Below, piece by piece: positions 1-62,391 of a DNA stretch of 64,000 nt. Numbering within the stretch: the stretch's first letter is position 1; the number at the start of each line of letters is the position of its first letter. The stretch spans positions 1-64,000 of IMG/VR virus record IMGVR_UViG_3300043570_001980, one strand, 5' to 3'. The notes under the pieces were generated by a model. It did no database searches and had not been told where the DNA came from. It was given only the letters and a program-made list of their open reading frames with translations. Made by a program: the position numbers and the translations under genes.

Positions 1-2
1 TA

Positions 3-737
3 GACGCATGGCGCATACAACAAAACCGCTGGCGCTGGAAACAAAGTCATACCAATGTTGTTCGTAGAGTATTAGGTCATGCCAAGCGTGGCACTAGAGT
101 TGTATATGTCGCAGGCAATCACGATGAATTCCTAAGACCCATGATACCATATGGGTTTTCTTTTGGTCTAATAGAAATACACAATCAAACGGAGCACATA
201 GGTGCTGATGGTAAGCACTACTTAGTTGTCCACGGTGACTTGTTTGATGGCATCACTAGACTTGCACCATGGATAGCGTTCTTAGGAGATAAAGCATATG
301 ACTTTGTTCTTGGCCTCAACAATAAATTTAATTGGATTCGTCGCCGCATGGGTTTTGGGTACTTTAGCCTTAGCAGGTATCTTAAGTACAAGGTTAAAAA
401 AGCAGTAGACTTTGTGTTCAAGTTTGAAGAGAACTTGGCCAACTACTGTAAGAAGCGAGGCTTTGATGGAGTCATATGCGGACACATACACCATGCAGAA
501 ATAAAAGAAATCAACGGTGTCGCATACATGAATGATGGCGACTGGGTTGAATCATGCACAGCACTTGTAGAACACTGGGATGGCCGTTGGGAAATAGTTA
601 CTTGGACTCGGGAGAAGGACGATGTGGATACTGATAATACTGGCAGTTCATATAAACGACTCAAAAGACGTGCCGGGACGGATAGAACTGATGTTCCAAG
701 ACCAACACTCTTGCCAACAGGCATTAAGTACAATTAA
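3..737 (+). CDS. Metallophosphoesterase, PlcP/LpxH-like (5'-truncated by window edge)
   Basis: Frame open from base 3 (DAWRIQQNRWRWK...VAGNHDEFL). Motifs GNHD, VHGDLFD, CGHIH, NDGDWVESCTALVE. Family assignment by motif recognition. Confidence 0.8.
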   Translation, partial: DAWRIQQNRWRWKQSHTNVVRRVLGHAKRGTRVVYVAGNHDEFLRPMIPYGFSFGLIEIHNQTEHIGADGKHYLVVHGDLFDGITRLAPWIAFLGDKAYDFVLGLNNKFNWIRRRMGFGYFSLSRYLKYKVKKAVDFVFKFEENLANYCKKRGFDGVICGHIHHAEIKEINGVAYMNDGDWVESCTALVEHWDGRWEIVTWTREKDDVDTDNTGSSYKRLKRRAGTDRTDVPRPTLLPTGIKYN

Positions 738-792
738 GTACAAATTAAAGTTTGAAAATTTTAAGGTGGTAGCAGAATGCAAAAAACAATAA
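622..792 (+). CDS. 56-aa small protein overlapping both neighbours
   Basis: Hand translation MWILIILAVHINDSKDVPGRIELMFQDQHSCQQALSTIKYKLKFENFKVVAECKKQ*. GGAGAAGG SD upstream; hydrophobic N-terminus; two Cys. Confidence 0.6.
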   Translation: MWILIILAVHINDSKDVPGRIELMFQDQHSCQQALSTIKYKLKFENFKVVAECKKQ

Positions 793-1493
793 GTGATAAA
801 ATAACTATCGTAGTACCTTGCAAGAATGAAGAAAATTACATTCATCATTTGCTAGACTCTCTGCGAGCACAAAATATTAGCACAACCAGAATCATCATTG
901 CTGATTGTTCTACTGATAACACTAGACAAGTTATACAAGATAACAGCTCGGGATTGAACGTTGAAATCATTGATGGTGGCCCTGTTAGTTTTGCCAAGAA
1001 CAACGGAGCACGATTGGTTACCACACCCTACATCTTGTTTATTGATGCTGATGTTCGCTTTTTTAAAAATACTGTGATTCAAGATGCGGTTGACAAAATT
1101 CAATCAAAAAACTTGGACCTGGTTGGACTAAACATCAAATGTTATGATCGTGACATGCGAGCCATGGTTGGATTTGCTCTTTTTAACACCATAAATCACA
1201 CATTGAAATTTTTCTCACCTTTTGCAGTTGGAGCATTCATGCTGACACGCAAAGATAAATTTGACGAGTTTGGTGGATTTCCTGAACAGTTTGCAACCTC
1301 TGAGGATTACTTTTTGTCAAGAAAGTATAGTCCTCGAAAGTTTAAAATTGTTCGACATTACTTTGGGCAGGATAGTCGTAGATTTAAAAAGATGGGATAT
1401 CTTGGAATGGGCAAGTATCTAATCAAGAACTTTATCAACCGCAACAACAAGAAATACTGGGACAGTTTAGATTCATCCAAATATTGGTCATAA
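777..1493 (+). CDS. Family 2 glycosyltransferase
   Basis: ITIVVPCKNEE, IIIADCSTD, and DXD motif FIDAD (GT-A fold). Confidence 0.9.
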   Translation: MQKTISDKITIVVPCKNEENYIHHLLDSLRAQNISTTRIIIADCSTDNTRQVIQDNSSGLNVEIIDGGPVSFAKNNGARLVTTPYILFIDADVRFFKNTVIQDAVDKIQSKNLDLVGLNIKCYDRDMRAMVGFALFNTINHTLKFFSPFAVGAFMLTRKDKFDEFGGFPEQFATSEDYFLSRKYSPRKFKIVRHYFGQDSRRFKKMGYLGMGKYLIKNFINRNNKKYWDSLDSSKYWS

Positions 1494-1513
1494 TTTTGTA
1501 ATAAAATTGTAAT
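1485..1513 (+). promoter_or_regulatory. Pho box (three half-sites at 11-bp period)
   Basis: TGGTCAT (1485), TTGTAAT (1496), TTGTAAT (1507) with A/T-rich spacers; resembles PhoB consensus CTGTCAT; directly upstream of pstS. Confidence 0.7.
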
Positions 1514-1555
1514 ATTATTCTCCTTAAATAATCTTGTCACAACAAGGAGAACTCA

Positions 1556-2557
1556 GTGAACAAACTACTAGCAATTTTATTAGCCGCAGTAACTTTATCA
1601 GCACAAGCAGACATCACAGGTGCTGGCGCAACATTTCCATTCCCAATCTATGCCAAGTGGGCCGAAGGATATAAGAAAACCACAGGCACTAGTTTAAACT
1701 ATCAGAGTATTGGTAGTTCGGGCGGCATCAGACAGATCAATGCCAAGACCGTGGACTTTGGAGCAACTGATGCCCCAGTAAGCGGTGAGAACTTGGACAA
1801 GATGGGACAAGTTCAGTTTCCTGCTATCATTGGCGGAACAGTTCCTGTTGTAAACTTAGACGGATTCAAGCCAGGTGAACTACGCATCACTGGTACAGTT
1901 ATGGCAGAAGTGTTCTTGGGCAACATTGCCAAGTGGAATGATCCTAAATTAACAGCATTGAATCCAGGTAAACAGTTACCCGATCAACCTATCACCATTG
2001 TACATCGTGCTGATGGGTCAGGTACAACATTTAACTGGACAGACTATCTTGCCACAGTTAGCCCTGAGTGGTTACAGCGTGTGGGTCGTGGTGCCGCAGT
2101 CAAGTGGCCGGCGGCTACAGCAGTTGGTGGCAAAGGTAATGAAGGCGTTGCTGCCAATGTGAACAGAATCAAAGGTTCAATTGGCTATGTAGAGTATGCG
2201 TATGTTAAGAAAAACAACATGACATTCCTACAACTACAGAACAAATCAGGCCGGTATGTTAGTCCAGATGACCTAACATTTGCCGCAGCCGCAGACGGTG
2301 CTGATTGGTTTAGTGTTCCTGGTATGGGGTTGAGTATTGTGGATCAACGTAATCCCAATGCTTGGCCTGTCAGTTCAGCTAGTTTCATCATCATGTACAA
2401 AGAACCGAAGAGCAAAGCCACCAGTGACGAAGTACTAAAGTTCTTTGATTGGGCATTTAAGAATGGTAAGAAAGATGCCGCTGATTTGGACTATGTGGCA
2501 TTGCCAGACAGTTTAACCAAGCAGATCCGTGAGCGTGTGTGGACACAGATTAAATAA
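1556..2557 (+). CDS. pstS: Phosphate ABC transporter periplasmic binding protein
   Basis: Signal peptide; ITGAGATFPFPIY, NYQSIGSSGGI, DFGATD, HRADGSGTT, IGYVEYAY. GTG start with AAGGAG SD. Confidence 0.97.
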   Translation: MNKLLAILLAAVTLSAQADITGAGATFPFPIYAKWAEGYKKTTGTSLNYQSIGSSGGIRQINAKTVDFGATDAPVSGENLDKMGQVQFPAIIGGTVPVVNLDGFKPGELRITGTVMAEVFLGNIAKWNDPKLTALNPGKQLPDQPITIVHRADGSGTTFNWTDYLATVSPEWLQRVGRGAAVKWPAATAVGGKGNEGVAANVNRIKGSIGYVEYAYVKKNNMTFLQLQNKSGRYVSPDDLTFAAAADGADWFSVPGMGLSIVDQRNPNAWPVSSASFIIMYKEPKSKATSDEVLKFFDWAFKNGKKDAADLDYVALPDSLTKQIRERVWTQIK

Positions 2558-2602
2558 ACCGCGTACAAAATAGAGTACGGCTAGAACTCGTAACTGGCAC
2601 TG

Positions 2603-2623
2603 AGCCCCGAAAGGGGCTTTTTT
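2603..2623 (+). terminator. Intrinsic terminator after pstS
   Basis: AGCCCC-GAAA-GGGGCT followed by T run. Confidence 0.9.
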
Positions 2624-2653
2624 ATACCCACTAAACTGTTGATTTATAACAAA

Positions 2654-2659
2654 TAAATA
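2654..2659 (+). promoter_or_regulatory. Late-type promoter TAAATA
   Basis: AATAAATA upstream of the secreted-protein operon; resembles T4 late TATAAATA. Confidence 0.55.
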
Positions 2660-2687
2660 CGGAGACAATAACAACTATAAGGTGAGT

Positions 2688-3911
2688 ATGATGAAAAAAA
2701 TTGCCCTGGGCCTGGCTAGCCTGGTGCTCGTGGTCACTGCCACTGCCACGGCACAAACAACTACTACATCCAGTTCTGCTGGTGGAACAACCACCGGCAC
2801 AAGTACACTTATTAATCAAGGTACCTACGACTCCAAGACTCTAGTTGATACTAACAGTACATCAAACAGTACCAGCACAGTAACATCAAACAGCAATACC
2901 AATAGCAACAGCACTAGCACCAGCGCAGCCACGGTCAACAGCACCAGTGTTAACACCAACAACAATAACAACGTTAGCACCAGTGTCAACACCAACAACA
3001 ACATTAATTCAGGTACCAGCACAATTAATAACAATAATGTCAACTCCGGTACAATGACATACAACAATAACAACAACAATGTTAATAGCGGTACAATGAC
3101 TTACAATAACAACAATGCAAGCACCAGTTCAAGTACTAATGTTAATACCAATAACAATATCAACACTGGTGATATGACTTATAGAAATATTAATACTTCA
3201 ACTAGTACTAGCACAGCAACTAACAATAATAACAACGTCAACACCGGTGATATGACGTATAGAAACATTAATAACAGTACAAGTACTGCCACCAACAACA
3301 ATAATAACGTTAGTACAAGCACTTCTACTAACAATAATGTAAACACTGGTGATATGACCAATCGTAATATCAGTACTTCAACCAGCGCAATCACAGCTAC
3401 CAATAATAATATTAATCAAAACAGTTCTGTGAATACAAATATTCAGCAAGGCGAGGTAACCAATACTAATATTAATAAAACTGAAATTACGCAACGAGTG
3501 ATTCAACCTCCTCCTACTGCGGTAGCACCTGCCATGCTGAGTGGCGGCAACGCTGATTTATGTTCAACAGGTAGTTCAGGCTCTGTACAGACACAGGTAT
3601 TTGGTGTAAGTTCGGGTGGCACAGTTAGAGATATGAATTGCGAACGATTGAAGTTATCTAAAACCTTGTATGACATGGGCATGAAGGTTGCGGCGGTTGC
3701 TACCATGTGCCAAGACCGTAGAGTGTTTGATGCTATGTTGGCCGCAGGCACCCCTTGCCCATACGAAGGCAAGATTGGTGAACAAGCACGAGCACAGTGG
3801 GAAGCAAATCCAGACAAGATTCCAAAGTTGGATGAGGTAAAAATAGATGACACTTATAAGAAAGTTGGCATTGGCGCTATCCTTGGCGTTGTTGTCCGCA
3901 AGTTATTCTAA
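2688..3911 (+). CDS. Secreted Asn/Thr/Ser-rich repeat protein with Cys-containing C-terminal domain
   Basis: Signal peptide (KKIALGLASLVLVVTATATA), about 200 aa low-complexity repeats, then a globular domain with 4 Cys. Start 2682/2688/2691 uncertain. Confidence 0.8.
   Translation: MMKKIALGLASLVLVVTATATAQTTTTSSSAGGTTTGTSTLINQGTYDSKTLVDTNSTSNSTSTVTSNSNTNSNSTSTSAATVNSTSVNTNNNNNVSTSVNTNNNINSGTSTINNNNVNSGTMTYNNNNNNVNSGTMTYNNNNASTSSSTNVNTNNNINTGDMTYRNINTSTSTSTATNNNNNVNTGDMTYRNINNSTSTATNNNNNVSTSTSTNNNVNTGDMTNRNISTSTSAITATNNNINQNSSVNTNIQQGEVTNTNINKTEITQRVIQPPPTAVAPAMLSGGNADLCSTGSSGSVQTQVFGVSSGGTVRDMNCERLKLSKTLYDMGMKVAAVATMCQDRRVFDAMLAAGTPCPYEGKIGEQARAQWEANPDKIPKLDEVKIDDTYKKVGIGAILGVVVRKLF
2860..3480 (+). 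repeat. Nested coding repeats (NNNNVNTGDMTYRNI / VNSGTMTYNNN)
   Basis: aacactggtgatatgac near 3162, 3240 and 3342; AAC/AAT runs. Confidence 0.85.
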
Positions 3912-6213
3912 CAGTCAAGATATATCCACTACAGGTAATTTAATAAATTACAGTACTTCACCTACGGGTACAACCAGTACCTGGAACAATGGCGTGTATG
4001 TTAATCAACTGTGCTTTTATGCCGGTGAACCAGGCAACTGTGGACCAAACCCTAGTATTAGACCAGGCGGCTACATCAATTTCAGTTATGGCACCGCAGA
4101 CCTGAATCAGGTCATTAACATAAACACAGCATTATCTGCGGGCGGAGCAGGTGTGCAACTTTCTGGATTTAACTACAGCTTCATGGCCAAGAACGGCAAT
4201 GGATGGGACGATGCTAGACAGGATTATCTTGCCGCTTATGTCAAGTTGTATGGTTCAGGTGGCAACTTAATAGCAAACTATGATTACTCTGCGGCAACTA
4301 ATAACAAATACAACTGGACTACTTTTAATTTCAACGAGACATTTGCTACATCTTACATTGCATCAACACTAAGCACAGCACAAGTAGGTATGGTGGGCAG
4401 AGATAATAATTTCTGGGCAGGCAATTATGGTCCAGAAGTTATGAATGTTGATTTTCGTTTAAAATACAAAGTAGATCCGTGTGCTACCAATCCTGCTTAT
4501 AGTTCAACATGTGCTGGCTTCAGCAGTATTCTTAATACCAATAATTTGTTAGATTCAACTCAAGGTGGATCAAGTCTAAATCAAGCGTTTGCAATCAACA
4601 CCGCATTGCAGAATGCCGGAGTTGGGGCAACCATACATGGATTCAACTACGGGTTCAACTGGAGAGTTGGGCAAGGTTTTTCAGGATGTACTGCTTGGAA
4701 TCAAGATGGGTCGTGTAGTTGGACCATGAACATACCTGCGTATGCTAATGCCACAGTCTCACTTACAAACAGTGGCAACCAGTCTATACAATCAAAGACT
4801 TACAGTTTTACGGGTGATGGCACCAGTGGATCGGTTAGTGACAAATATTTGTTGCCAGTTAGTATGAATCAATCCATGTTGGGTACAGGTAGAATTGTAG
4901 GGTCAGCATCAGGCACCGGTTCTTCTGTGGAAGGTGCATGGGCAACAATGATTTATACTGCTGATCCTTGTGTTGCTAATCCCTTATATAGTACTAATTG
5001 TAAGGGCTATGCTTATGCTATGGCTAAACAATCCATGGCTAATAATACAACTTCAAACAATATGATGGGCACTGATGGTGCACCATTCATAGACCCAACA
5101 ACTGGTACACAGTCTGACCCCACGCGACCTCCACCTCCACCGGGCACTGAAGGAGCTGCCGGATCCCCGCCGGGAAGTCAGCCACCACCAGGTTCAGAGC
5201 CCCCACCTGGAAGTCAGCCTCCTCCGGGTAGTCCACCACCGCCAGGAACAACACAAACTGCTTCTAATAATCCAGCAGGTCCACCGCCTGCAAATCAACC
5301 TCCTCCACCAAGTGGCGGCAGTAGTCAACCCCGAGCAGGTGAAGTTAAAACAGCCGGTGATAACAAAAGCACATCATCTTCGCCGGTATCATTAAGTTCC
5401 GTAATGAGTATGATTAGTAGTAATCAAGCTAGAATAGGCAATGAAGCAAAAGCAGTTGTTCAGGCCGCCGAAGCACAGGCTACTCAATCTGCTACATCTG
5501 CACAGCAACAAGCAGAAGCAGTAGCTGGTTCCGCAGTTGCACAAAGTATGGCTAGTAGTTCAACAGTAACAGGTGCATCATCGGGTACCACAACTAGAAC
5601 AGCAACTCAAACTCAAGTCAGTGCATTTTCATTACCAACAGGTCAAGCTTCTACTGCCACAAGTATAGAAGCAATACGCCCGCCAACGCAAGCAACCACA
5701 ACTGAAACTGTTCAAAGTACTGGTACAGGATTATCGGCACTTACTACAACATATCAATTCAGCTCTATTTCAGCACCTTCTACTAGTGCATTTTCAGCAG
5801 TTGAATCATCATTAACCAACTTTGGATTTCAGTTACCAACTGGACGATCAAATATACAAATAGAACCCGAATCAACTCCCCAAACTGAAGGTATCAAAGT
5901 AGGCGGTCGTTCACCGTTAAATGATGCTATAGAACAGCGCCCGATGTTGCCAAATGCAATTACACAAGAACAAAAGACAGACGCAGTAAACAAAAATGTT
6001 CAACCAAATGAACTAGCAGGCAGGGTAGATATAACTAGAATGGCGACACAACCTGCTGGTTATCAAGCATACTCAATGATGATGCCTGATGTGGCATTCT
6101 ATGCACCACGAGAGATTTACCGGAATCAAGTTAATGTAGACAATGCCAGAGTCTTACGTCAATTGTCTAGTGATCGATTACACCAAGACTTGGTGAACCT
6201 ACAATACAAATAA
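3847..6213 (+). CDS. Large secreted protein with Pro-rich linker
   Basis: Signal peptide; two similar Cys-bounded domains (DPCATNPAYSSTC, DPCVANPLYSTNC); GSQPPP repeats; Ser/Thr/Ala-rich tail. Confidence 0.8.
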   Translation: MTLIRKLALALSLALLSASYSNSQDISTTGNLINYSTSPTGTTSTWNNGVYVNQLCFYAGEPGNCGPNPSIRPGGYINFSYGTADLNQVININTALSAGGAGVQLSGFNYSFMAKNGNGWDDARQDYLAAYVKLYGSGGNLIANYDYSAATNNKYNWTTFNFNETFATSYIASTLSTAQVGMVGRDNNFWAGNYGPEVMNVDFRLKYKVDPCATNPAYSSTCAGFSSILNTNNLLDSTQGGSSLNQAFAINTALQNAGVGATIHGFNYGFNWRVGQGFSGCTAWNQDGSCSWTMNIPAYANATVSLTNSGNQSIQSKTYSFTGDGTSGSVSDKYLLPVSMNQSMLGTGRIVGSASGTGSSVEGAWATMIYTADPCVANPLYSTNCKGYAYAMAKQSMANNTTSNNMMGTDGAPFIDPTTGTQSDPTRPPPPPGTEGAAGSPPGSQPPPGSEPPPGSQPPPGSPPPPGTTQTASNNPAGPPPANQPPPPSGGSSQPRAGEVKTAGDNKSTSSSPVSLSSVMSMISSNQARIGNEAKAVVQAAEAQATQSATSAQQQAEAVAGSAVAQSMASSSTVTGASSGTTTRTATQTQVSAFSLPTGQASTATSIEAIRPPTQATTTETVQSTGTGLSALTTTYQFSSISAPSTSAFSAVESSLTNFGFQLPTGRSNIQIEPESTPQTEGIKVGGRSPLNDAIEQRPMLPNAITQEQKTDAVNKNVQPNELAGRVDITRMATQPAGYQAYSMMMPDVAFYAPREIYRNQVNVDNARVLRQLSSDRLHQDLVNLQYK
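5125..5310 (+). repeat. GSxPPP 18-bp coding repeat
   Basis: GSQPPP GSEPPP GSQPPP GSPPPP. Confidence 0.75.
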
Positions 6214-6223
6214 GGAAACAAAA

Positions 6224-6844
6224 ATGGCAGAAGAAATAAAAAACGTAAACGCAAAGGTTGATGAACTAGAAGCAGCCGCCAAAAAGTACGCATCAAAAGA
6301 TACTGTTATAAGCATTGGCGGCTACGAGTTTACCCCAGCCAAACTAATGGTTGCAGCCACAATCGTATCATCTATACTAGGTGGACTGTATGGATCATTT
6401 GAAGTGTACAAAGACTACGTGGGCATGAAGAAAAAGATTGCTGAATATGCCGCTCCAGACCTAAGTGGATTTGACAAGCGACTGGCAGTGATCGAAGAAA
6501 ACTCTAGCAAAACCAGCGACTACACACGTGATATCAAAACTGATTTGAAGAATGATATTCGCCGTAATGAAACTGTGACCGAGCAAGTAGAACGTAGCGT
6601 TAAGAATGCACAGCGTGAAACTGAGTCAGAAATGCGTGACATGCGCAAGGCTGTGCGTGAAGACCTGGAACGTGCTAGGACCGAAGCGGCTGCAATTCGC
6701 CGAGATATGGAAAACACACGCAAAGAAATCAACAGTGAATTTACTGCGGCCCGTAGAGAAATCAATCGCGAAGTAGAAACACTAAAGAGAGAAGTCGATA
6801 GTAAAATACAAAAAGCCATGGATAATCCATTGGCCAACAAGTAA
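6224..6844 (+). CDS. Single-TM coiled-coil protein
   Basis: TM segment LMVAATIVSSILGGLY followed by long charged heptad-like region; AAGGA SD. Confidence 0.8.
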   Translation: MAEEIKNVNAKVDELEAAAKKYASKDTVISIGGYEFTPAKLMVAATIVSSILGGLYGSFEVYKDYVGMKKKIAEYAAPDLSGFDKRLAVIEENSSKTSDYTRDIKTDLKNDIRRNETVTEQVERSVKNAQRETESEMRDMRKAVREDLERARTEAAAIRRDMENTRKEINSEFTAARREINREVETLKREVDSKIQKAMDNPLANK

Positions 6845-6845
6845 C

Positions 6846-7010
6846 ATGTTCAACGCCATAGGCTCAATAATGTTAGCAGGTATGCTAGCCCAAGAGCCAA
6901 GGTGTGTGAAATGGACATGGACGGGCGATGTCTACAATCGCAGAGTGGTATGCCTAGAATGGTCTAAACCCCCGCCGCAACCTAAAGATAAGGATCCTAA
7001 GAAAACATGA
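6846..7010 (+). CDS. 54-aa secreted/membrane peptide
   Basis: MFNAIGSIMLAGMLAQEPRCVKWTWTGDVYNRRVVCLEWSKPPPQPKDKDPKKT*; ATGA-coupled to the next gene. Confidence 0.6.
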   Translation: MFNAIGSIMLAGMLAQEPRCVKWTWTGDVYNRRVVCLEWSKPPPQPKDKDPKKT

Positions 7011-7489
7011 TTGATCCTATCACAATTGGCATTGCGTTCACGGCCGCTCAACAATCGGTAAATTATATCAAAAAGGCCATTGCCCTAGGCAAAGATGTCA
7101 ACAGTCTATACGGTCAGTTTGCTAAGTTTTTTGAAAACAGCGACACAATTCACGCTGCCAGCATAGAGGCACAAACCAGTAAAAAAATTCTCACTGACGG
7201 ACAGATTAGAGCAATGTCTGTACAGATTGCCATGCAGAGTAAAGCCCTGCGTGATGCTGAAAAAGAACTAAAAGAAATGTTGATATGGTCTGGCAACAAA
7301 GATGTCTGGGATGAAATGATGGCCGAGCGTGTGCGTATGTACAAGGAACGTGCCAAACTACAGGCAGACATAAAAAATGCCAGGATACAAGCACAGTCCG
7401 ACATGATAGATAGACTGCTTATAGGTACAAGTTTCATGGCAATAGCGATCCCTGTTGTGCTGTTCACTTTTGCTATGATCACCAGATAA
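7007..7489 (+). CDS. Hypothetical protein with C-terminal TM
   Basis: 160 aa, helical, hydrophobic C-terminus. Confidence 0.75.
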   Translation: MIDPITIGIAFTAAQQSVNYIKKAIALGKDVNSLYGQFAKFFENSDTIHAASIEAQTSKKILTDGQIRAMSVQIAMQSKALRDAEKELKEMLIWSGNKDVWDEMMAERVRMYKERAKLQADIKNARIQAQSDMIDRLLIGTSFMAIAIPVVLFTFAMITR

Positions 7490-7514
7490 ATAATATATTA
7501 AAGAAAGACTTAAC

Positions 7515-8051
7515 ATGGCAGAAGTAAAAACATTGTCACGTTCTGAACGTGAAGCACAAATTAAAGATAGAGCAGGATGGGTCATTACTGTCATTGCACT
7601 ATTATTAGCAATTACAACCTATATGTCTAGCGGATTTAGTAGCAAGATATTAAGTAACACCATCAAAGCAAATGATACTTGGAACTTTTATCAAGCCAAG
7701 AGTATCAAACAAAGTATTGCCGAAGGACAGTTAGAAACCACCACAGATCCAAAACGCAAAGAACAACTACAAGCCAAGATTGATCGTTACGAGTCTGACC
7801 CAGCCAAAGGTGAGGGCAAGAAAGAGTTGATGGCCAAAGCATTACAGATTGAAGCCGAACGTGATGAAGCCAAGAAACATACCCCATGGTTGACGTTTGC
7901 CGCAATGGCATTCCAGTTGGCCATTGTACTACTGTCTGCTAGTATTTTAGCTGTGGACAAACGTATGTTTTGGGGCAGTATCGGCGTAAGTATTTTTGGA
8001 ACATTGCTGTTAACCCAAGGCATTTGGCTTGTTATACCACTTGTGATATAA
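7515..8051 (+). CDS. DUF4337-like membrane protein
   Basis: TM, then ANDTWNFYQAKSIK, coiled coil and two TMs. TAAATA at 7487. Confidence 0.7.
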   Translation: MAEVKTLSRSEREAQIKDRAGWVITVIALLLAITTYMSSGFSSKILSNTIKANDTWNFYQAKSIKQSIAEGQLETTTDPKRKEQLQAKIDRYESDPAKGEGKKELMAKALQIEAERDEAKKHTPWLTFAAMAFQLAIVLLSASILAVDKRMFWGSIGVSIFGTLLLTQGIWLVIPLVI

Positions 8052-14291: not shown

Positions 14292-15599
14292 ATGGAACAA
14301 AATAAATTGAATATCAACCAACAAACTTTTTGTATTAGTCCCTGGACTGAAGTCAGGATCAATTCAGACGGCACAATGAACTTTTGTCATTTTGCTGATC
14401 GTGCTGACTTACCAAACAGTGAGCATATCAATTCAATGACTGTGGATGAGTATTTTTCAAATTCAAATTCAGCACAATCTGCAAGAAAAAATATACTCAA
14501 TGGAAACCCTGTTGCCCGATGTCATCGTTGCTATAAAGAAGATCAACACAGTGAAGTAACATTTCGTAGTCGCAGAAATCTGCAGGCTGCTATATTTCCG
14601 GGACAGGATTTTCAACAAAGCGCAGAAGAAAGTCCTGTTTGGAAAATTATCAATGCTGATAAATCTAGTCCAAGATTTTATCATATTAGCTTTAGTAATA
14701 TTTGCAACATGGCCTGTGTGATGTGTGATGGGTTTAACAGCACACTATTGGCTGCCGATTTAAATAAAATTGGCCTAAGAGATTCTAGTATTCCGATCAA
14801 ACACGACTGGACTGATACACCCACTTGGGGAAAATTCTGTGATCACTTGTTAAACAACAATGATATTGTTTGTCTGCATGTCATGGGCGGAGAACCGTTG
14901 TACCATAAACGATTTAGAGATTTGATAACATTCTTGTGCAACAACAATCACACAGATTTCCATCTTACTTTTGTGACCAATGGAACTATCTACGATCCAG
15001 AGTTGATGACACAATTAGAAAAATTTAAGTCTGTGCAGATTGAAATCAGCATTGAGAATCTAGACATTAGTAATGATTATATTCGATACCCAGGAAAAAC
15101 TAGCAAGATTGTCGACAACATTCGACAATATCTAGCCCACTCAAATGAAAAATTTAGCACAGTATTACGCACAGTTCCGCAACTGTTAAGTCTGATGCAC
15201 TACGATAAACTTTTGGATTTTTGTCTAGAACACTCTATCATTATTGACAGTAATGTCCTACATCGTCCAGAGTTTTTTAGACCCTGTTACCTTCCTAACT
15301 CGGCCAAGGAAGTAATTAAATCAAGACTTGCAAGATTTATTCTCAAAGATAAAGATGTACTGCACAATATTAACGTTAGAAATCAATCAAGAGTGGTAGA
15401 ATCAATATCTCATCATGCACAAATGATTATAGGATTGTTGGACCAGACTGGAGTCAACATAGAAACTGTTAGACAAGAACTAACTGACTATTGTGCTAAA
15501 TTTGATCAATTACGAGAACATGACTTGCGTGAGTTTGTGCCAGAACTAGCAGAATTTTTAGATGAGTACGGTTATGCAAAAAAACGATATCAAAATTAA
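14292..15599 (+). CDS. Radical SAM protein
   Basis: CNMACVMC; GGEP; N-terminal FCISPW and CxxC auxiliary motif. Confidence 0.9.
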   Translation: MEQNKLNINQQTFCISPWTEVRINSDGTMNFCHFADRADLPNSEHINSMTVDEYFSNSNSAQSARKNILNGNPVARCHRCYKEDQHSEVTFRSRRNLQAAIFPGQDFQQSAEESPVWKIINADKSSPRFYHISFSNICNMACVMCDGFNSTLLAADLNKIGLRDSSIPIKHDWTDTPTWGKFCDHLLNNNDIVCLHVMGGEPLYHKRFRDLITFLCNNNHTDFHLTFVTNGTIYDPELMTQLEKFKSVQIEISIENLDISNDYIRYPGKTSKIVDNIRQYLAHSNEKFSTVLRTVPQLLSLMHYDKLLDFCLEHSIIIDSNVLHRPEFFRPCYLPNSAKEVIKSRLARFILKDKDVLHNINVRNQSRVVESISHHAQMIIGLLDQTGVNIETVRQELTDYCAKFDQLREHDLREFVPELAEFLDEYGYAKKRYQN

Positions 15600-56883: not shown

Positions 56884-57870
56884 TCAGTGTCCGCATGCAC
56901 TAACACACATATACAACTTACCCTGCGCCACACTGGGTAAAGTCCAGGTTTTTTCTACCTGTTCAAACCAATCAATACAATGCTCTAGACTGTATTCTAA
57001 TGCATTGTTTTCTTTAACTAAATCTTTAAATTGACTATTACCGGGCTGGTGCATTGTCTTTGGAAAAAATCCCAAATAACAACAAGGATACACAGATCCG
57101 TCGGCAGCTATGTAAATCTCTTTTTGTTTTATATGGCCACAATCTATTTGTGCATTATCATCAACCCAGGGTATTTTCTTTTTATGATCAAACCAGGTAA
57201 CATGATCTTCAATCAAATTGTTAGCGTCGGGTATGTCAGGTTGTGCATCACCTAGCCAATGACTAAACTCGCCGTTTCTTGTAAATACCGGTCCTTGGTT
57301 ACGTCCGTGATCTCGTACTATAAAATCTGAAAATCCCAACTGACGGCTCAGTGTCTGACAACTATCAAATTGATGTTGATTATGTTTAAACGGGATAAAT
57401 TTCCAAACAGCATTTCCGCCTGCCTGGATTAATGCCACAGCATTATCGATGATCTTCTCCCAGTCAGTGTCCTGACGGTACAGACTGTGTGTGTCTTTGA
57501 GCCCGTCTAATGCAAATAATACTTCAATTCGATGGTTGTTTAATTTCTGCCACCAGGCAGTAGAACGTGTACTGCCATTTGTTTCAATTTGTATTTTGGC
57601 AGTACTATTAGATAAAAAGTACTCGACTATTTCCAACGCATCGCTGGCCAAACTAAAATCTCCAAGATTTCCGTTAAAGTTAATACGGTTAATTTGTTTT
57701 AAAAAGTCTGAAGGGAATATGTGTTGAATATCACTAAGTGACAACTCAGTTAACGGATATCCTCCATTAAAATCTACGCCTCGGTAGTTACGCATACACA
57801 TGGGACATCGTGCATTACAACGAGAACTAAGTTCAATATGTAATGCACGGATTTGGTCTATTTTAATCAT
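56884..57870 (-). CDS. Radical SAM protein with SPASM/twitch-type Cys motif
   Basis: CNARCPMC; C-terminal C...DGSVYPCC...C...CG; TATAAATA 5 nt upstream. Confidence 0.9.
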   Translation of the reverse strand: MIKIDQIRALHIELSSRCNARCPMCMRNYRGVDFNGGYPLTELSLSDIQHIFPSDFLKQINRINFNGNLGDFSLASDALEIVEYFLSNSTAKIQIETNGSTRSTAWWQKLNNHRIEVLFALDGLKDTHSLYRQDTDWEKIIDNAVALIQAGGNAVWKFIPFKHNQHQFDSCQTLSRQLGFSDFIVRDHGRNQGPVFTRNGEFSHWLGDAQPDIPDANNLIEDHVTWFDHKKKIPWVDDNAQIDCGHIKQKEIYIAADGSVYPCCYLGFFPKTMHQPGNSQFKDLVKENNALEYSLEHCIDWFEQVEKTWTLPSVAQGKLYMCVSACGH

Positions 57871-57906: not shown

Positions 57907-58659
57907 TTATTGATATAATCGCAATACCTCTCCAATTATAGGATGTCTTTGAATGTCACGACCGGTCATCCTGCACACAGCCATACCGTTGATGGGTCTT
58001 GCTTCTAATTTTAAGCACAGATCCAACAACCCATTGTTATCTTGTTGACGGTCTGCTTGTTCCACATCTCCAGTGACCACAATACGACTGCCTGTGCCTA
58101 TGCGGCTTAACAGCATCTTCATTTGTGCAGGAGTAGCGTTTTGCATTTCGTCTGCAACAATCCAAGCATGCTTGAACGTGCGTCCACGCATGTAGGCCAA
58201 GGGTGAGATTTCAATGGTGCCGTCTTCAATCATTGCAGTGATCTCTGTGGGTCGGTAGTACTCACGCAGTACATCAAGCAGGGGTCGTGTCCAGGGTTCC
58301 ATTTTGGCCACTAGATTGCCGGGTAAAAAGCCATGTTGTTCATCCTCCACGCCTATGGCGGGACGAGTTAGAACAATACGCTTGGCTTCTCCACTTCTAA
58401 ATGCTTTGACCGCTGCCAGCATAGCCAGATAAGTTTTACCAGTTCCTGCTGGACCTGCTGTTACTATGATGTGCTGATCTGCGTCGAGTAAATTTAATAT
58501 AAGATTTTCTTGATTTTTAGTTTTGGGTATAAGTTCTATTGCTCGTTGTTTTAAGTTGGGTTGTAAGTTAAATTGAATGGTATTTTCAGTAACTGTTTGG
58601 ATGCGTTTTTGCGCCTTGGCGCCTCGGTTTCTACTCAAGTTCGGTTCTCCTTTGAACAT
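57907..58659 (-). CDS. phoH: PhoH-like ATPase
   Basis: GPAGTGKT, LTRP, GFLPG, PLAYMRGRTF, DEMQN, GDVEQ.D; alternative TTG start at 58638. Confidence 0.95.
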   Translation of the reverse strand: MFKGEPNLSRNRGAKAQKRIQTVTENTIQFNLQPNLKQRAIELIPKTKNQENLILNLLDADQHIIVTAGPAGTGKTYLAMLAAVKAFRSGEAKRIVLTRPAIGVEDEQHGFLPGNLVAKMEPWTRPLLDVLREYYRPTEITAMIEDGTIEISPLAYMRGRTFKHAWIVADEMQNATPAQMKMLLSRIGTGSRIVVTGDVEQADRQQDNNGLLDLCLKLEARPINGMAVCRMTGRDIQRHPIIGEVLRLYQ

Positions 58660-61404: not shown

Positions 61405-62391
61405 ATGAGTACATTAAAAAAGTTTATAGCCGCATTACTTGTTACTGCAAGTACACTAGTTTACGCATGGGAACCAACCAAACCCGTTACTGTATACATA
61501 GGTAACACACCCGGTGCAGGTAATGAAATGGCCTTTAGAAAACTAGCTGATATTGTACAGAAACAAAACCCAAAGTTTGTGTATGTTGTACAAAACATTC
61601 CTGGAGCAGATAGTGTTATTGCCAACAACCGTTTTTTAGAAGCGCCAAATGACGGCTATACTATTAACTTGCCTAGTCATATGAGCAGTTATGTTACAAA
61701 TGATATCTGGGAAAAGTCAATTAAGAAATACAACTACGACTCATTTGTTGATGTGTTGACCATGGGCAAGAGCCCGTTGGTATTGGTTGCTGGCGTCAAA
61801 AGCGGCATTAACACCCCACAAGAGTTTGTGAAGTATATTCAGTCAGGCAGAACAATCAACATTGCCATTGGTGGTGGCGCACATCGCACAGCATTTGAGT
61901 ATTTGATGGACAAGGGCAAGGGCAACAAAGACACAGTCAAACCCATCAAGTTTAACGGACCACAGCCTGCAGTACAAAGTGCCGCTAGCTTTGATCCAAA
62001 ATTTGCTGGCACTGAGTTTGCTATTATTCCTATTGCAGTGGCCAAAGCTCTAGTTGATGCAGGCAAGGTAAAACCCATTGGATTTACAGGCACACGTCGG
62101 ATGGCACAATTTCCTGATGTCCCATTGTTAAACACAGTAGCGCCTGGTATCAATGTGTATGCGGCCTGGTCAATACAATTGCCGCCTGGCACAGACAAGG
62201 ACATTGTTGCATGGTATCAACAGCAATTCAGCAAGGCTATTCGTTCAGCAGAATACAAAGAGTACACGGATGCCAATGTTATTTTCTATGCTGAAGATGA
62301 GTTGACTCCTGTCGGGCTTCGAAAGCAAATGGACGAATTACGTGCGGCATTTATTCCTGTGTTGAGTCGAATTGATTTAAGTAAAGAATGA
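61405..62391 (+). CDS. Bug/TctC-family periplasmic solute receptor
   Basis: Signal peptide; P.KPV..Y...PG, N.PGA, A.NDGYT, VKPIG.TG.RR..FPDVP, W.....P.GT.K.IV. Confidence 0.85.
   Translation: MSTLKKFIAALLVTASTLVYAWEPTKPVTVYIGNTPGAGNEMAFRKLADIVQKQNPKFVYVVQNIPGADSVIANNRFLEAPNDGYTINLPSHMSSYVTNDIWEKSIKKYNYDSFVDVLTMGKSPLVLVAGVKSGINTPQEFVKYIQSGRTINIAIGGGAHRTAFEYLMDKGKGNKDTVKPIKFNGPQPAVQSAASFDPKFAGTEFAIIPIAVAKALVDAGKVKPIGFTGTRRMAQFPDVPLLNTVAPGINVYAAWSIQLPPGTDKDIVAWYQQQFSKAIRSAEYKEYTDANVIFYAEDELTPVGLRKQMDELRAAFIPVLSRIDLSKE

Follow-up and report, generated by a model that had tools for sequence, protein, structure and literature searches.

The first three genes of a long phage contig raise the question of whether a virus may carry a bacterial pathway that strips phosphate from the membrane lipids of its host, replaces these with sugar lipids and boosts phosphate uptake. 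The window analysed here, a stretch of 64,000 nucleotides, is the start of a 341,990-bp jumbo-phage contig (IMG/VR UViG_3300043570_001980). In the original prediction, a PlcP-like metallophosphoesterase, a GT2 glycosyltransferase and pstS, with a Pho box between the last two, were proposed to form a phosphorus-sparing lipid-remodelling unit. The three co-oriented genes and the box were confirmed, and those of the proposed tests that can be done by computation all came out in favour of the interpretation. Two corrections are nevertheless necessary: the esterase is only a fragment, and the three-gene adjacency including pstS is found in only a minority of relatives.

The first gene (3-737, plus strand, as are the other features of the unit) comprises the C-terminal 244 codons and the stop of a metallophosphoesterase cut by the start of the contig. 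The N-terminal ~45 codons, with the DxH and GD motifs, and the promoter lie outside it, and since the contig start has no second copy in the collection, no terminal repeat supplies the missing part. The fragment matches Pfam Metallophos and contains the motifs GNHDE, HGDLFD, CGHIH and NDGDWVES, whereas the missing DxH and GD motifs are invariant in 48 aligned relatives, including copies 83-91% identical to that of the window. Full-length relatives are 287-294 aa long and 82-91% identical. After a gap of 39 nt, which holds no terminator-like site (738-776) but contains a Shine-Dalgarno-like AAGGTGG (764-770), follows a 238-aa GT2 (GT-A type) glycosyltransferase (777-1493), matching PF00535 with 74 bits and PF13506 (GT21) with 28.6 bits against a cut-off of 21.7. 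The motifs DADV, TSED and QDSRRF of this protein are invariant in 13 phage copies. The third gene (1556-2557) has a GTG start, a ribosome binding site AAGGAGA (1544-1550) and a hydrophobic N-terminal signal peptide ending in AQA, and encodes PstS, the periplasmic high-affinity phosphate-binding protein, as indicated by the scores of 404 bits for NF008171 (cut-off 339), 367 bits for TIGR00975 (cut-off 205) and 221 bits for phrog_5385. The unit is closed by an intrinsic terminator (2602-2625), in which a stem of 7 pairs (5 G-C, 2602-2619) is followed by a T run.

The esterase is not LpxH, the label carried by most of its homologues in metagenomes. The esterase scores 46 bits against the NF003743 cut-off of 134 and 34 bits against the TIGR01854 cut-off of 190 (46-47 and 34-36 bits for full-length phage copies), and an esterase from a Pseudomonas operon scores almost the same, 54 and 43 bits. 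Identity to E. coli LpxH is 23% over 120 residues, E. coli LpxH indeed has GNRD where the phage protein has GNHD, and in the tree LpxH sits on a very long branch outside the group. In contrast, the 80 nearest genome hits, which come from Alpha-, Beta- and Gammaproteobacteria, including Pseudomonas, Limnohabitans and Burkholderiales, are 48-59% identical to the phage protein, and about 60 of them have a GT4 immediately downstream. This is the plcP-agt operon proven in P. aeruginosa (PMC8528852) and B. cenocepacia (PMC13691135). Judging by these same-genus, same-operon proxies for the characterised proteins, the phage esterase is of the PlcP type. Other bacterial neighbours are also users of diacylglycerol, namely a BtaA-like DUF3419 protein, a GT1-type transferase and a GT2 plus GT4 pair, in accordance with the gene arrangements described in PMC4796936. 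In addition, the bacterial upstream regions are enriched for Pho boxes, as three mismatches or fewer were observed in 19 of 80 regions against 0.9% of background windows. The members of the clusters of the 10 best cellular-type representatives carried only LpxH labels. The structural model of a 91%-identical copy (pLDDT 85) has a predicted helical insertion at residues 121-194, and its best PDB matches are LpxH-lipid X complexes at TM 0.5-0.6.

In phage relatives, 84 of 85 loci have a GT2 or an Agt-like GT4 about 25 nt after the esterase, the one exception being a sequence that ends just after the esterase, and the GT2 has the esterase just upstream in 78 of 78 phage loci that show the upstream DNA. 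The GT2 and the GT4 occupy the same slot and never occur together in the loci seen. Carriers of the two are interleaved on the esterase tree, although the tree within phages is poorly resolved, and hence the count of 7-9 switches is not reliable, with strongly supported branches forcing only one. Meanwhile pstS is a variable neighbour (16 of 85 loci) rather than a fixed third member.

The box between the GT2 and pstS (1496-1513) is a 7-4-7 direct repeat, TTGTAAT-AAAA-TTGTAAT, which differs from the E. coli consensus at 4 of 14 specified positions. A search with that consensus allowing 3 mismatches gave only chance-level hits and missed the site. However, it is the only exact match to YTGTMAY-N4-YTGTMAY in the 64 kb, and exact matches occur in 9 of 9 distinct pstS upstream regions, wherever pstS lies, with base changes that keep the repeat and variants ranging up to TTGTCAT-N4-CTGTCAC. 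A likely -10 element, the conserved TAAATAAT (1525-1532), lies 11-13 nt downstream of the box. TAAATA is conserved at the same spacing in all pstS upstream regions and many esterase upstream regions, although its promoter function is inferred. A second box was found upstream of the esterase gene in relatives: of 57 distinct regions, 15 match exactly, 31 at one mismatch or fewer and 42 at two or fewer, the background being 0.0003, 0.0018 and 0.015 per 100 nt.

Taken together, these data suggest, with a probability of roughly 0.7, that the locus is a phage-borne membrane-lipid remodelling module wired into the Pho regulon and sitting beside a phosphate-uptake gene. According to the proposed mechanism, phosphorylated PhoB of the phosphate-starved host, a host as yet unknown, would bind the phage boxes, placed where a -35 element would be, and switch on the plcP-glycosyltransferase pair and pstS. 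The esterase, which has no signal peptide and is predicted to carry a helical lid inserted in a metallophosphoesterase core, would act at the cytoplasmic face of the inner membrane as a phospholipase C, cutting phospholipids into diacylglycerol and a phosphorylated head group that enters the phosphorus pool used to build a genome holding at least 684,000 phosphates per copy. The GT2, which also lacks a signal peptide and has a basic, aromatic C-terminus, would transfer a sugar from a nucleotide sugar to the diacylglycerol, so that the bilayer is refilled with phosphorus-free glycolipid and diacylglycerol does not accumulate, while the exported PstS would feed the host PstCAB transporter. In the absence of biochemical or expression data for any phage copy, PhoB binding, phospholipase C activity, the acceptor and sugar of the GT2 and the benefit to the phage remain inferences, and the acceptor, deduced from linkage only, is the weakest of them.

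It is indeed possible, though unlikely, that the esterase is a PlcP-type phospholipase C under Pho control while the GT2 glycosylates another lipid (a carotenoid, hopanoid or polyprenyl phosphate) or a non-lipid target, leaving the diacylglycerol to host enzymes. The GT2 is not homologous to the proven Agt and has no close characterised relative, the best NCBIfam match being TIGR04283 at 63 bits against a cut-off of 182. Its nearest named relatives (the TIGR04283 family, CrtQ-like and CruG carotenoid transferases, and HpnB) act on other acceptors, a single-sequence AlphaFold model was unusable (pLDDT 39), and none of the 80 nearest bacterial plcP loci carries an orthologous GT2. On the other hand, the linkage is strict in both directions in phages, the GT2 and the Agt-like GT4 replace each other, the gene after plcP in bacteria is typically a diacylglycerol-consuming lipid synthase of varying family, the related named families all act on hydrophobic lipid acceptors, and PF13506 (the GT21 family named for ceramide glucosyltransferase) matches above its threshold.

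An LpxH-like lipid A enzyme paired with a GT2 that modifies LPS or another envelope glycan, for example to block superinfection, seems considerably less likely. Such a reading is favoured by the JGI naming of the homologues, by LpxH being the closest solved structure, by a Xanthomonas phage paper listing lpxH and mgs among cell-wall or LPS auxiliary genes (PMC13384950), and by weak PHROG matches of the GT2 to GtrB-like O-antigen conversion proteins (30 bits). However, in addition to the failed equivalog cut-offs and the GNHD motif, no lipid A genes lie nearby, the conserved partner in many relatives is an Agt-like GT4, and surface masking does not explain Pho boxes shared with pstS. Least probable of all is cellular DNA wrongly joined to a viral contig, or a passenger island with no role in infection. 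Although the genes are of bacterial type, lie at the very end of the contig and sit in varying contexts among relatives, at least 268 IMG/VR stretches carry the esterase and at least 575 carry the GT2, many of them deep inside contigs of 230-384 kb and flanked by phage-type genes. The phage copies are 77-100% identical to each other but at most 59% identical to any of 185,579 species genomes and form one shallow clade apart from the bacteria, and the active-site residues and the boxes are conserved. The window itself also holds a T4-type clamp loader, phoH (57907-58659) and virion-protein matches, but no tRNA genes. Blastn of window positions 1-8000 against 50,697 phage records found no match.

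One of the closest known systems is the bacterial PlcP-Agt lipid renovation operon (S. meliloti SMc00171, Phaeobacter MED193_17359, SAR11 HTCC7211 PB7211_983/960, P. aeruginosa PA3219/PA3218, B. cenocepacia BCAL2364/2365), which has a metallophosphoesterase of the same family, a glycosyltransferase immediately downstream and Pho boxes upstream. Many phage relatives carry a GT4 that is 36-45% identical to the bacterial operon GT4, whereas in the window the partner is a GT2 instead of the retaining GT4 Agt, and its product would presumably be beta-linked. Furthermore, pstS is placed beside the pair, there is no dagK, and the carrier is a jumbo phage. LpxH shares the calcineurin-like core with a helical lid inserted at the same place (profile E-value 1e-15) but differs in the respects given above. 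In the type 3 and 5 arrangements of PMC4796936, a GT-A-fold, GT2/GT21-like Pgt-type processive glycosyltransferase sits directly after plcP, and the GT2 of the window matches Pfam GT21 above threshold, although PF00535 is much stronger. The only bacterial plcP-adjacent GT2 that was found (315 aa, in an alphaproteobacterial locus) aligns with the phage GT2 over just 48 residues and is not an orthologue.

Cyanophages and pelagiphages are known to carry phosphate auxiliary genes (pstS, phoH, phoA) with Pho boxes, and the coupling of a phage to the host PhoBR response appears to be established for cyanophages (PMC10976474). Here, in a lineage of 320-385 kb phages, the regulon would extend to enzymes that probably act on membrane lipids, and no report of a phage-encoded PlcP was found in the literature searched. 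A homologue 49% identical to the phage esterase is nevertheless present in the cultured Pelagibacter phage Mosig EXVC030M (Mosig_00120; host HTCC1062), where it lies next to a divergently transcribed pstS-like gene with no glycosyltransferase beside it, is annotated as a putative UDP-2,3-diacylglucosamine hydrolase and is not discussed in the genome announcement. It is about as likely as not that a widespread lineage of such phages, and at least one cultured pelagiphage, takes over the phosphate-starvation response of the host not only to import phosphate but to dismantle the host's own membrane phospholipids for phosphorus while refilling the bilayer with glycolipid. With two unrelated glycosyltransferases recruited interchangeably, infected cells may then carry virus-specific glycolipids, which could be detected as lipid markers of infection in phosphorus-poor waters.

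Phage phosphate genes known so far act on uptake or on dissolved organic phosphorus. The apparently repeated GT2/GT4 replacement is a natural experiment pointing to functional equivalence, and it assigns a candidate function to an uncharacterised small GT2 family. The module, if it acts as proposed, would link viral infection to the phospholipid-to-glycolipid ratios that are used as field indicators of phosphorus stress. It would also mean that part of the environmental "PlcP" signal is viral. Thousands of homologues at 82-91% identity, mostly labelled LpxH, exist in metagenomes.

The first 64 kb of IMG/VR contig UViG_3300043570_001980 (341,990 bp) look like a phage, since they carry a T4-type clamp loader (phrog_168, 259 bits), a PhoH-like gene, matches to virion and tail-fibre proteins, and mostly orphan ORFs on one strand. 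The PhoH-like product is a phosphate-starvation-inducible ATPase (57907-58659, minus strand; phrog_170, 218 bits), another classic phage phosphate-associated gene in the same genome. At the left end of the window lie three co-oriented genes. The first of these (3-737) encodes the last 244 residues of a metallophosphoesterase, in which the motifs GNHDE, HGDLFD, CGHIH and NDGDWVES are present; the gene is cut by the contig start, and since the contig start has no second copy in the collection, no terminal repeat supplies the rest. The second gene (777-1493) codes for a 238-aa GT2 glycosyltransferase (PF00535, 74 bits; PF13506/GT21, 28.6 bits), whereas the product of the third (1556-2557) is PstS (NF008171, 404 bits against a cut-off of 339), which has a signal peptide. 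A terminator follows at 2602-2625. The GT2 gene and pstS are separated by a region containing the repeat TTGTAAT-AAAA-TTGTAAT (1496-1513), followed about 12 nt further on by TAAATAAT and then by a strong ribosome-binding site.

Two large secreted, low-complexity proteins (2682-3911 and 3847-6213, plus strand) start directly after the pstS terminator, one rich in Asn, Ser and Thr and the other with Pro-rich repeats. Neither has a Pfam family, although the first weakly matches phrog_20531. The window also harbours a TctC/Bug-family periplasmic binding protein of tripartite tricarboxylate transporters (61405-62391, plus strand; PF03401, 76 bits), which is an unusual transport-related auxiliary gene, and two radical SAM proteins (14292-15599, plus strand, and 56884-57870, minus strand), one of them with a SPASM domain. 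Radical SAM genes are carried near the module by related contigs as well. In one related jumbo-phage contig (384-kb JGI contig Ga0620987_00182, locus L001:1-20885) the module sits in an island of host-like genes, including those for ribonucleotide reductase, Fe-SOD, NifU and Fe-S assembly proteins, glutaredoxin, AhpC, Cpn10, ribosomal protein S21, Hsp70, Hsp20 and ClpS.

Full-length relatives of the esterase are 287-294 aa long and 82-91% identical, and more than 8,000 database clusters with E <= 0.001, labelled LpxH by JGI, were found. However, these proteins do not meet the criteria for LpxH: NF003743 scores 46 bits (cut-off 134) and TIGR01854 scores 34 bits (cut-off 190), while the identity to E. 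coli LpxH is only 23% over 120 residues, with E. coli having GNRD where the phage has GNHD. In contrast, the 80 nearest matches among 185,579 species genomes are 48-59% identical, and all are of the proteobacterial type, including Pseudomonas, Limnohabitans, Rhodoferax, Thiobacillus, Acetobacteraceae and Rhodospirillaceae. In about 60 of them a GT4 follows directly, and in a single bacterial locus of an Acetobacterales MAG (L124:1059-4729) two tandem copies of the esterase-GT4 pair are found. The esterase followed directly by a GT4 is the plcP-agt operon, the function of which was proven genetically and by lipidomics in P. aeruginosa (PA3219/PA3218; PMC8528852), B. cenocepacia (BCAL2364/2365; PMC13691135), and Phaeobacter and SAR11 (PMC4796936). 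Where no GT4 follows, a BtaA-like DUF3419 protein, a GT1-type transferase, a GT2 plus GT4 pair, or PhoU was found instead, in agreement with the six arrangements described in PMC4796936. In addition, the bacterial upstream regions are enriched for E. coli-type Pho boxes, with three mismatches or fewer in 19 of 80 regions against 0.9% of control windows.

Phylogenetic analysis placed the jumbo-phage proteins in one shallow clade beside the bacterial group, with E. coli LpxH on a very long branch, although it should be noted that membership in the PlcP family rests on proxies from the same genera with the same operon rather than on the experimentally characterised proteins themselves. A structural model of a 91%-identical copy (pLDDT 85) has the esterase core plus a helical insertion at residues 121-194, and its best solved matches are LpxH-lipid X complexes, at only TM 0.5-0.6. 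Hence, the protein has the same predicted architecture as a lipid-handling esterase, but it is not the same enzyme.

Comparative analysis of 85 phage loci showed that 84 have a glycosyltransferase starting about 25 nt after the esterase stop, while the one exception ends just after the esterase. The partner is either the GT2 found in the window or a GT4 of about 335 aa, which is 36-45% identical to bacterial operon GT4s and has the same profile of weak NCBIfam matches to lipid glycosyltransferases as a Pseudomonas operon GT4. When searched from the GT2 side, 78 of 78 loci with visible upstream DNA have the esterase upstream, adjacent or overlapping in 77 cases and about 1 kb away in one. GT2 and GT4 carriers are interleaved on the esterase tree, and parsimony gives 7-9 changes, yet the backbone of this tree is weak. 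That two unrelated transferases replace each other in one slot, and never occur together in the loci seen, is the main argument that the GT2 does the same job as Agt. The GT2 keeps DADV, TSED and a QDSRRF motif in all 13 copies aligned, and its nearest named relatives all glycosylate hydrophobic lipids.

Meanwhile, pstS is a variable neighbour, present in 16 of the 85 loci, one of which (L006) is the window's own contig. It lies downstream of the GT2 in the window and in loci L019, L026, L030, L038 and L040, and upstream of the esterase in L011-L015, L020, L024 and L082. In relatives without an adjacent pstS, an acidic Ala/Val/Glu-rich ORF of about 215-218 aa sits next to the esterase-GT2 pair (L021:7581-8234 and L008:5069-5713; also L009, L010, L022, L032, L043, L046 and L062). 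In the two loci inspected, L008 and L021, this ORF is preceded by exact Pho boxes (two overlapping ones in L008), and it looks like a third phage gene under Pho-box control, of unknown function, which is absent from the window.

Every one of 9 distinct regions upstream of pstS has an exact YTGTMAY-N4-YTGTMAY, with variants ranging from TTGTAAT/TTGTAAT to TTGTCAT/CTGTCAC, each followed by TAAATA. The same element lies upstream of the esterase gene exactly in 15 of 57 distinct regions, in 31 at one mismatch or fewer, and in 42 at two or fewer, whereas elsewhere in the loci the respective rates are 0.0003, 0.0018 and 0.015 per 100 nt. Where pstS precedes the esterase, no box lies between them, so the three genes probably form a single operon. 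L038, the closest relative of the window with the same gene order, has CTGTAAT-AAAA-TTGTAAT 22 nt before the esterase start, and the lost promoter of the window was therefore probably of this kind. In L007, L018, L019, L026 and L038 (around 5833-5875, upstream of the esterase gene) the esterase start codon lies only 22-33 nt after the Pho box and 4-6 nt after the TAAATA element, with no Shine-Dalgarno sequence, which may be an indication that the plcP message is leaderless or nearly so; pstS, by contrast, has a 43-45 nt spacing and a strong AAGGAGA.

The bacterial pathway is well known, but its presence in phages, under Pho-box control and with a GT2 partner, appears to be undescribed, since no paper joining PlcP with phage-encoded or auxiliary genes was found in the literature searched. 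Among 50,697 phage records only five carry a homologue. One of them is the cultured Pelagibacter phage Mosig, whose copy is 49% identical, lies next to a divergent pstS-like gene, and is annotated as a diacylglucosamine hydrolase, although the genome announcement does not discuss it. The intergenic region shared by these two divergent genes (L166:3851-4000) holds TTTAACA/CTTAACA repeats at 11-bp spacing, which may represent a SAR11-type Pho box serving both. The other homologues belong to two records of Synechococcus phage S-SRM01 (36%), an unannotated 12-kb phage contig from human faecal samples (40%) and a 595-kb uncultured phage (27.5%).

Taken together, the presence of the three adjacent genes and the Pho-box-like repeat is confirmed, and the original prediction that they represent a phosphorus-sparing lipid-remodelling module is supported by the computational tests available, with an overall probability of about 0.7. 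All biochemical steps, however, are inferred, and the acceptor of the GT2 is the weakest of them, whereas the family assignments, the linkage and the conserved regulatory repeats rest on sequence evidence. According to the most likely scenario, in a phosphate-starved host PhoB would activate the phage plcP-GT pair and pstS, the cytoplasmic esterase would cut inner-membrane phospholipids into diacylglycerol and phospho-head groups, the GT2 would cap the diacylglycerol with a sugar, and PstS would raise phosphate uptake. Since a genome copy needs at least 683,980 phosphates (2 x 341,990), a membrane reservoir is plausibly worth tapping.
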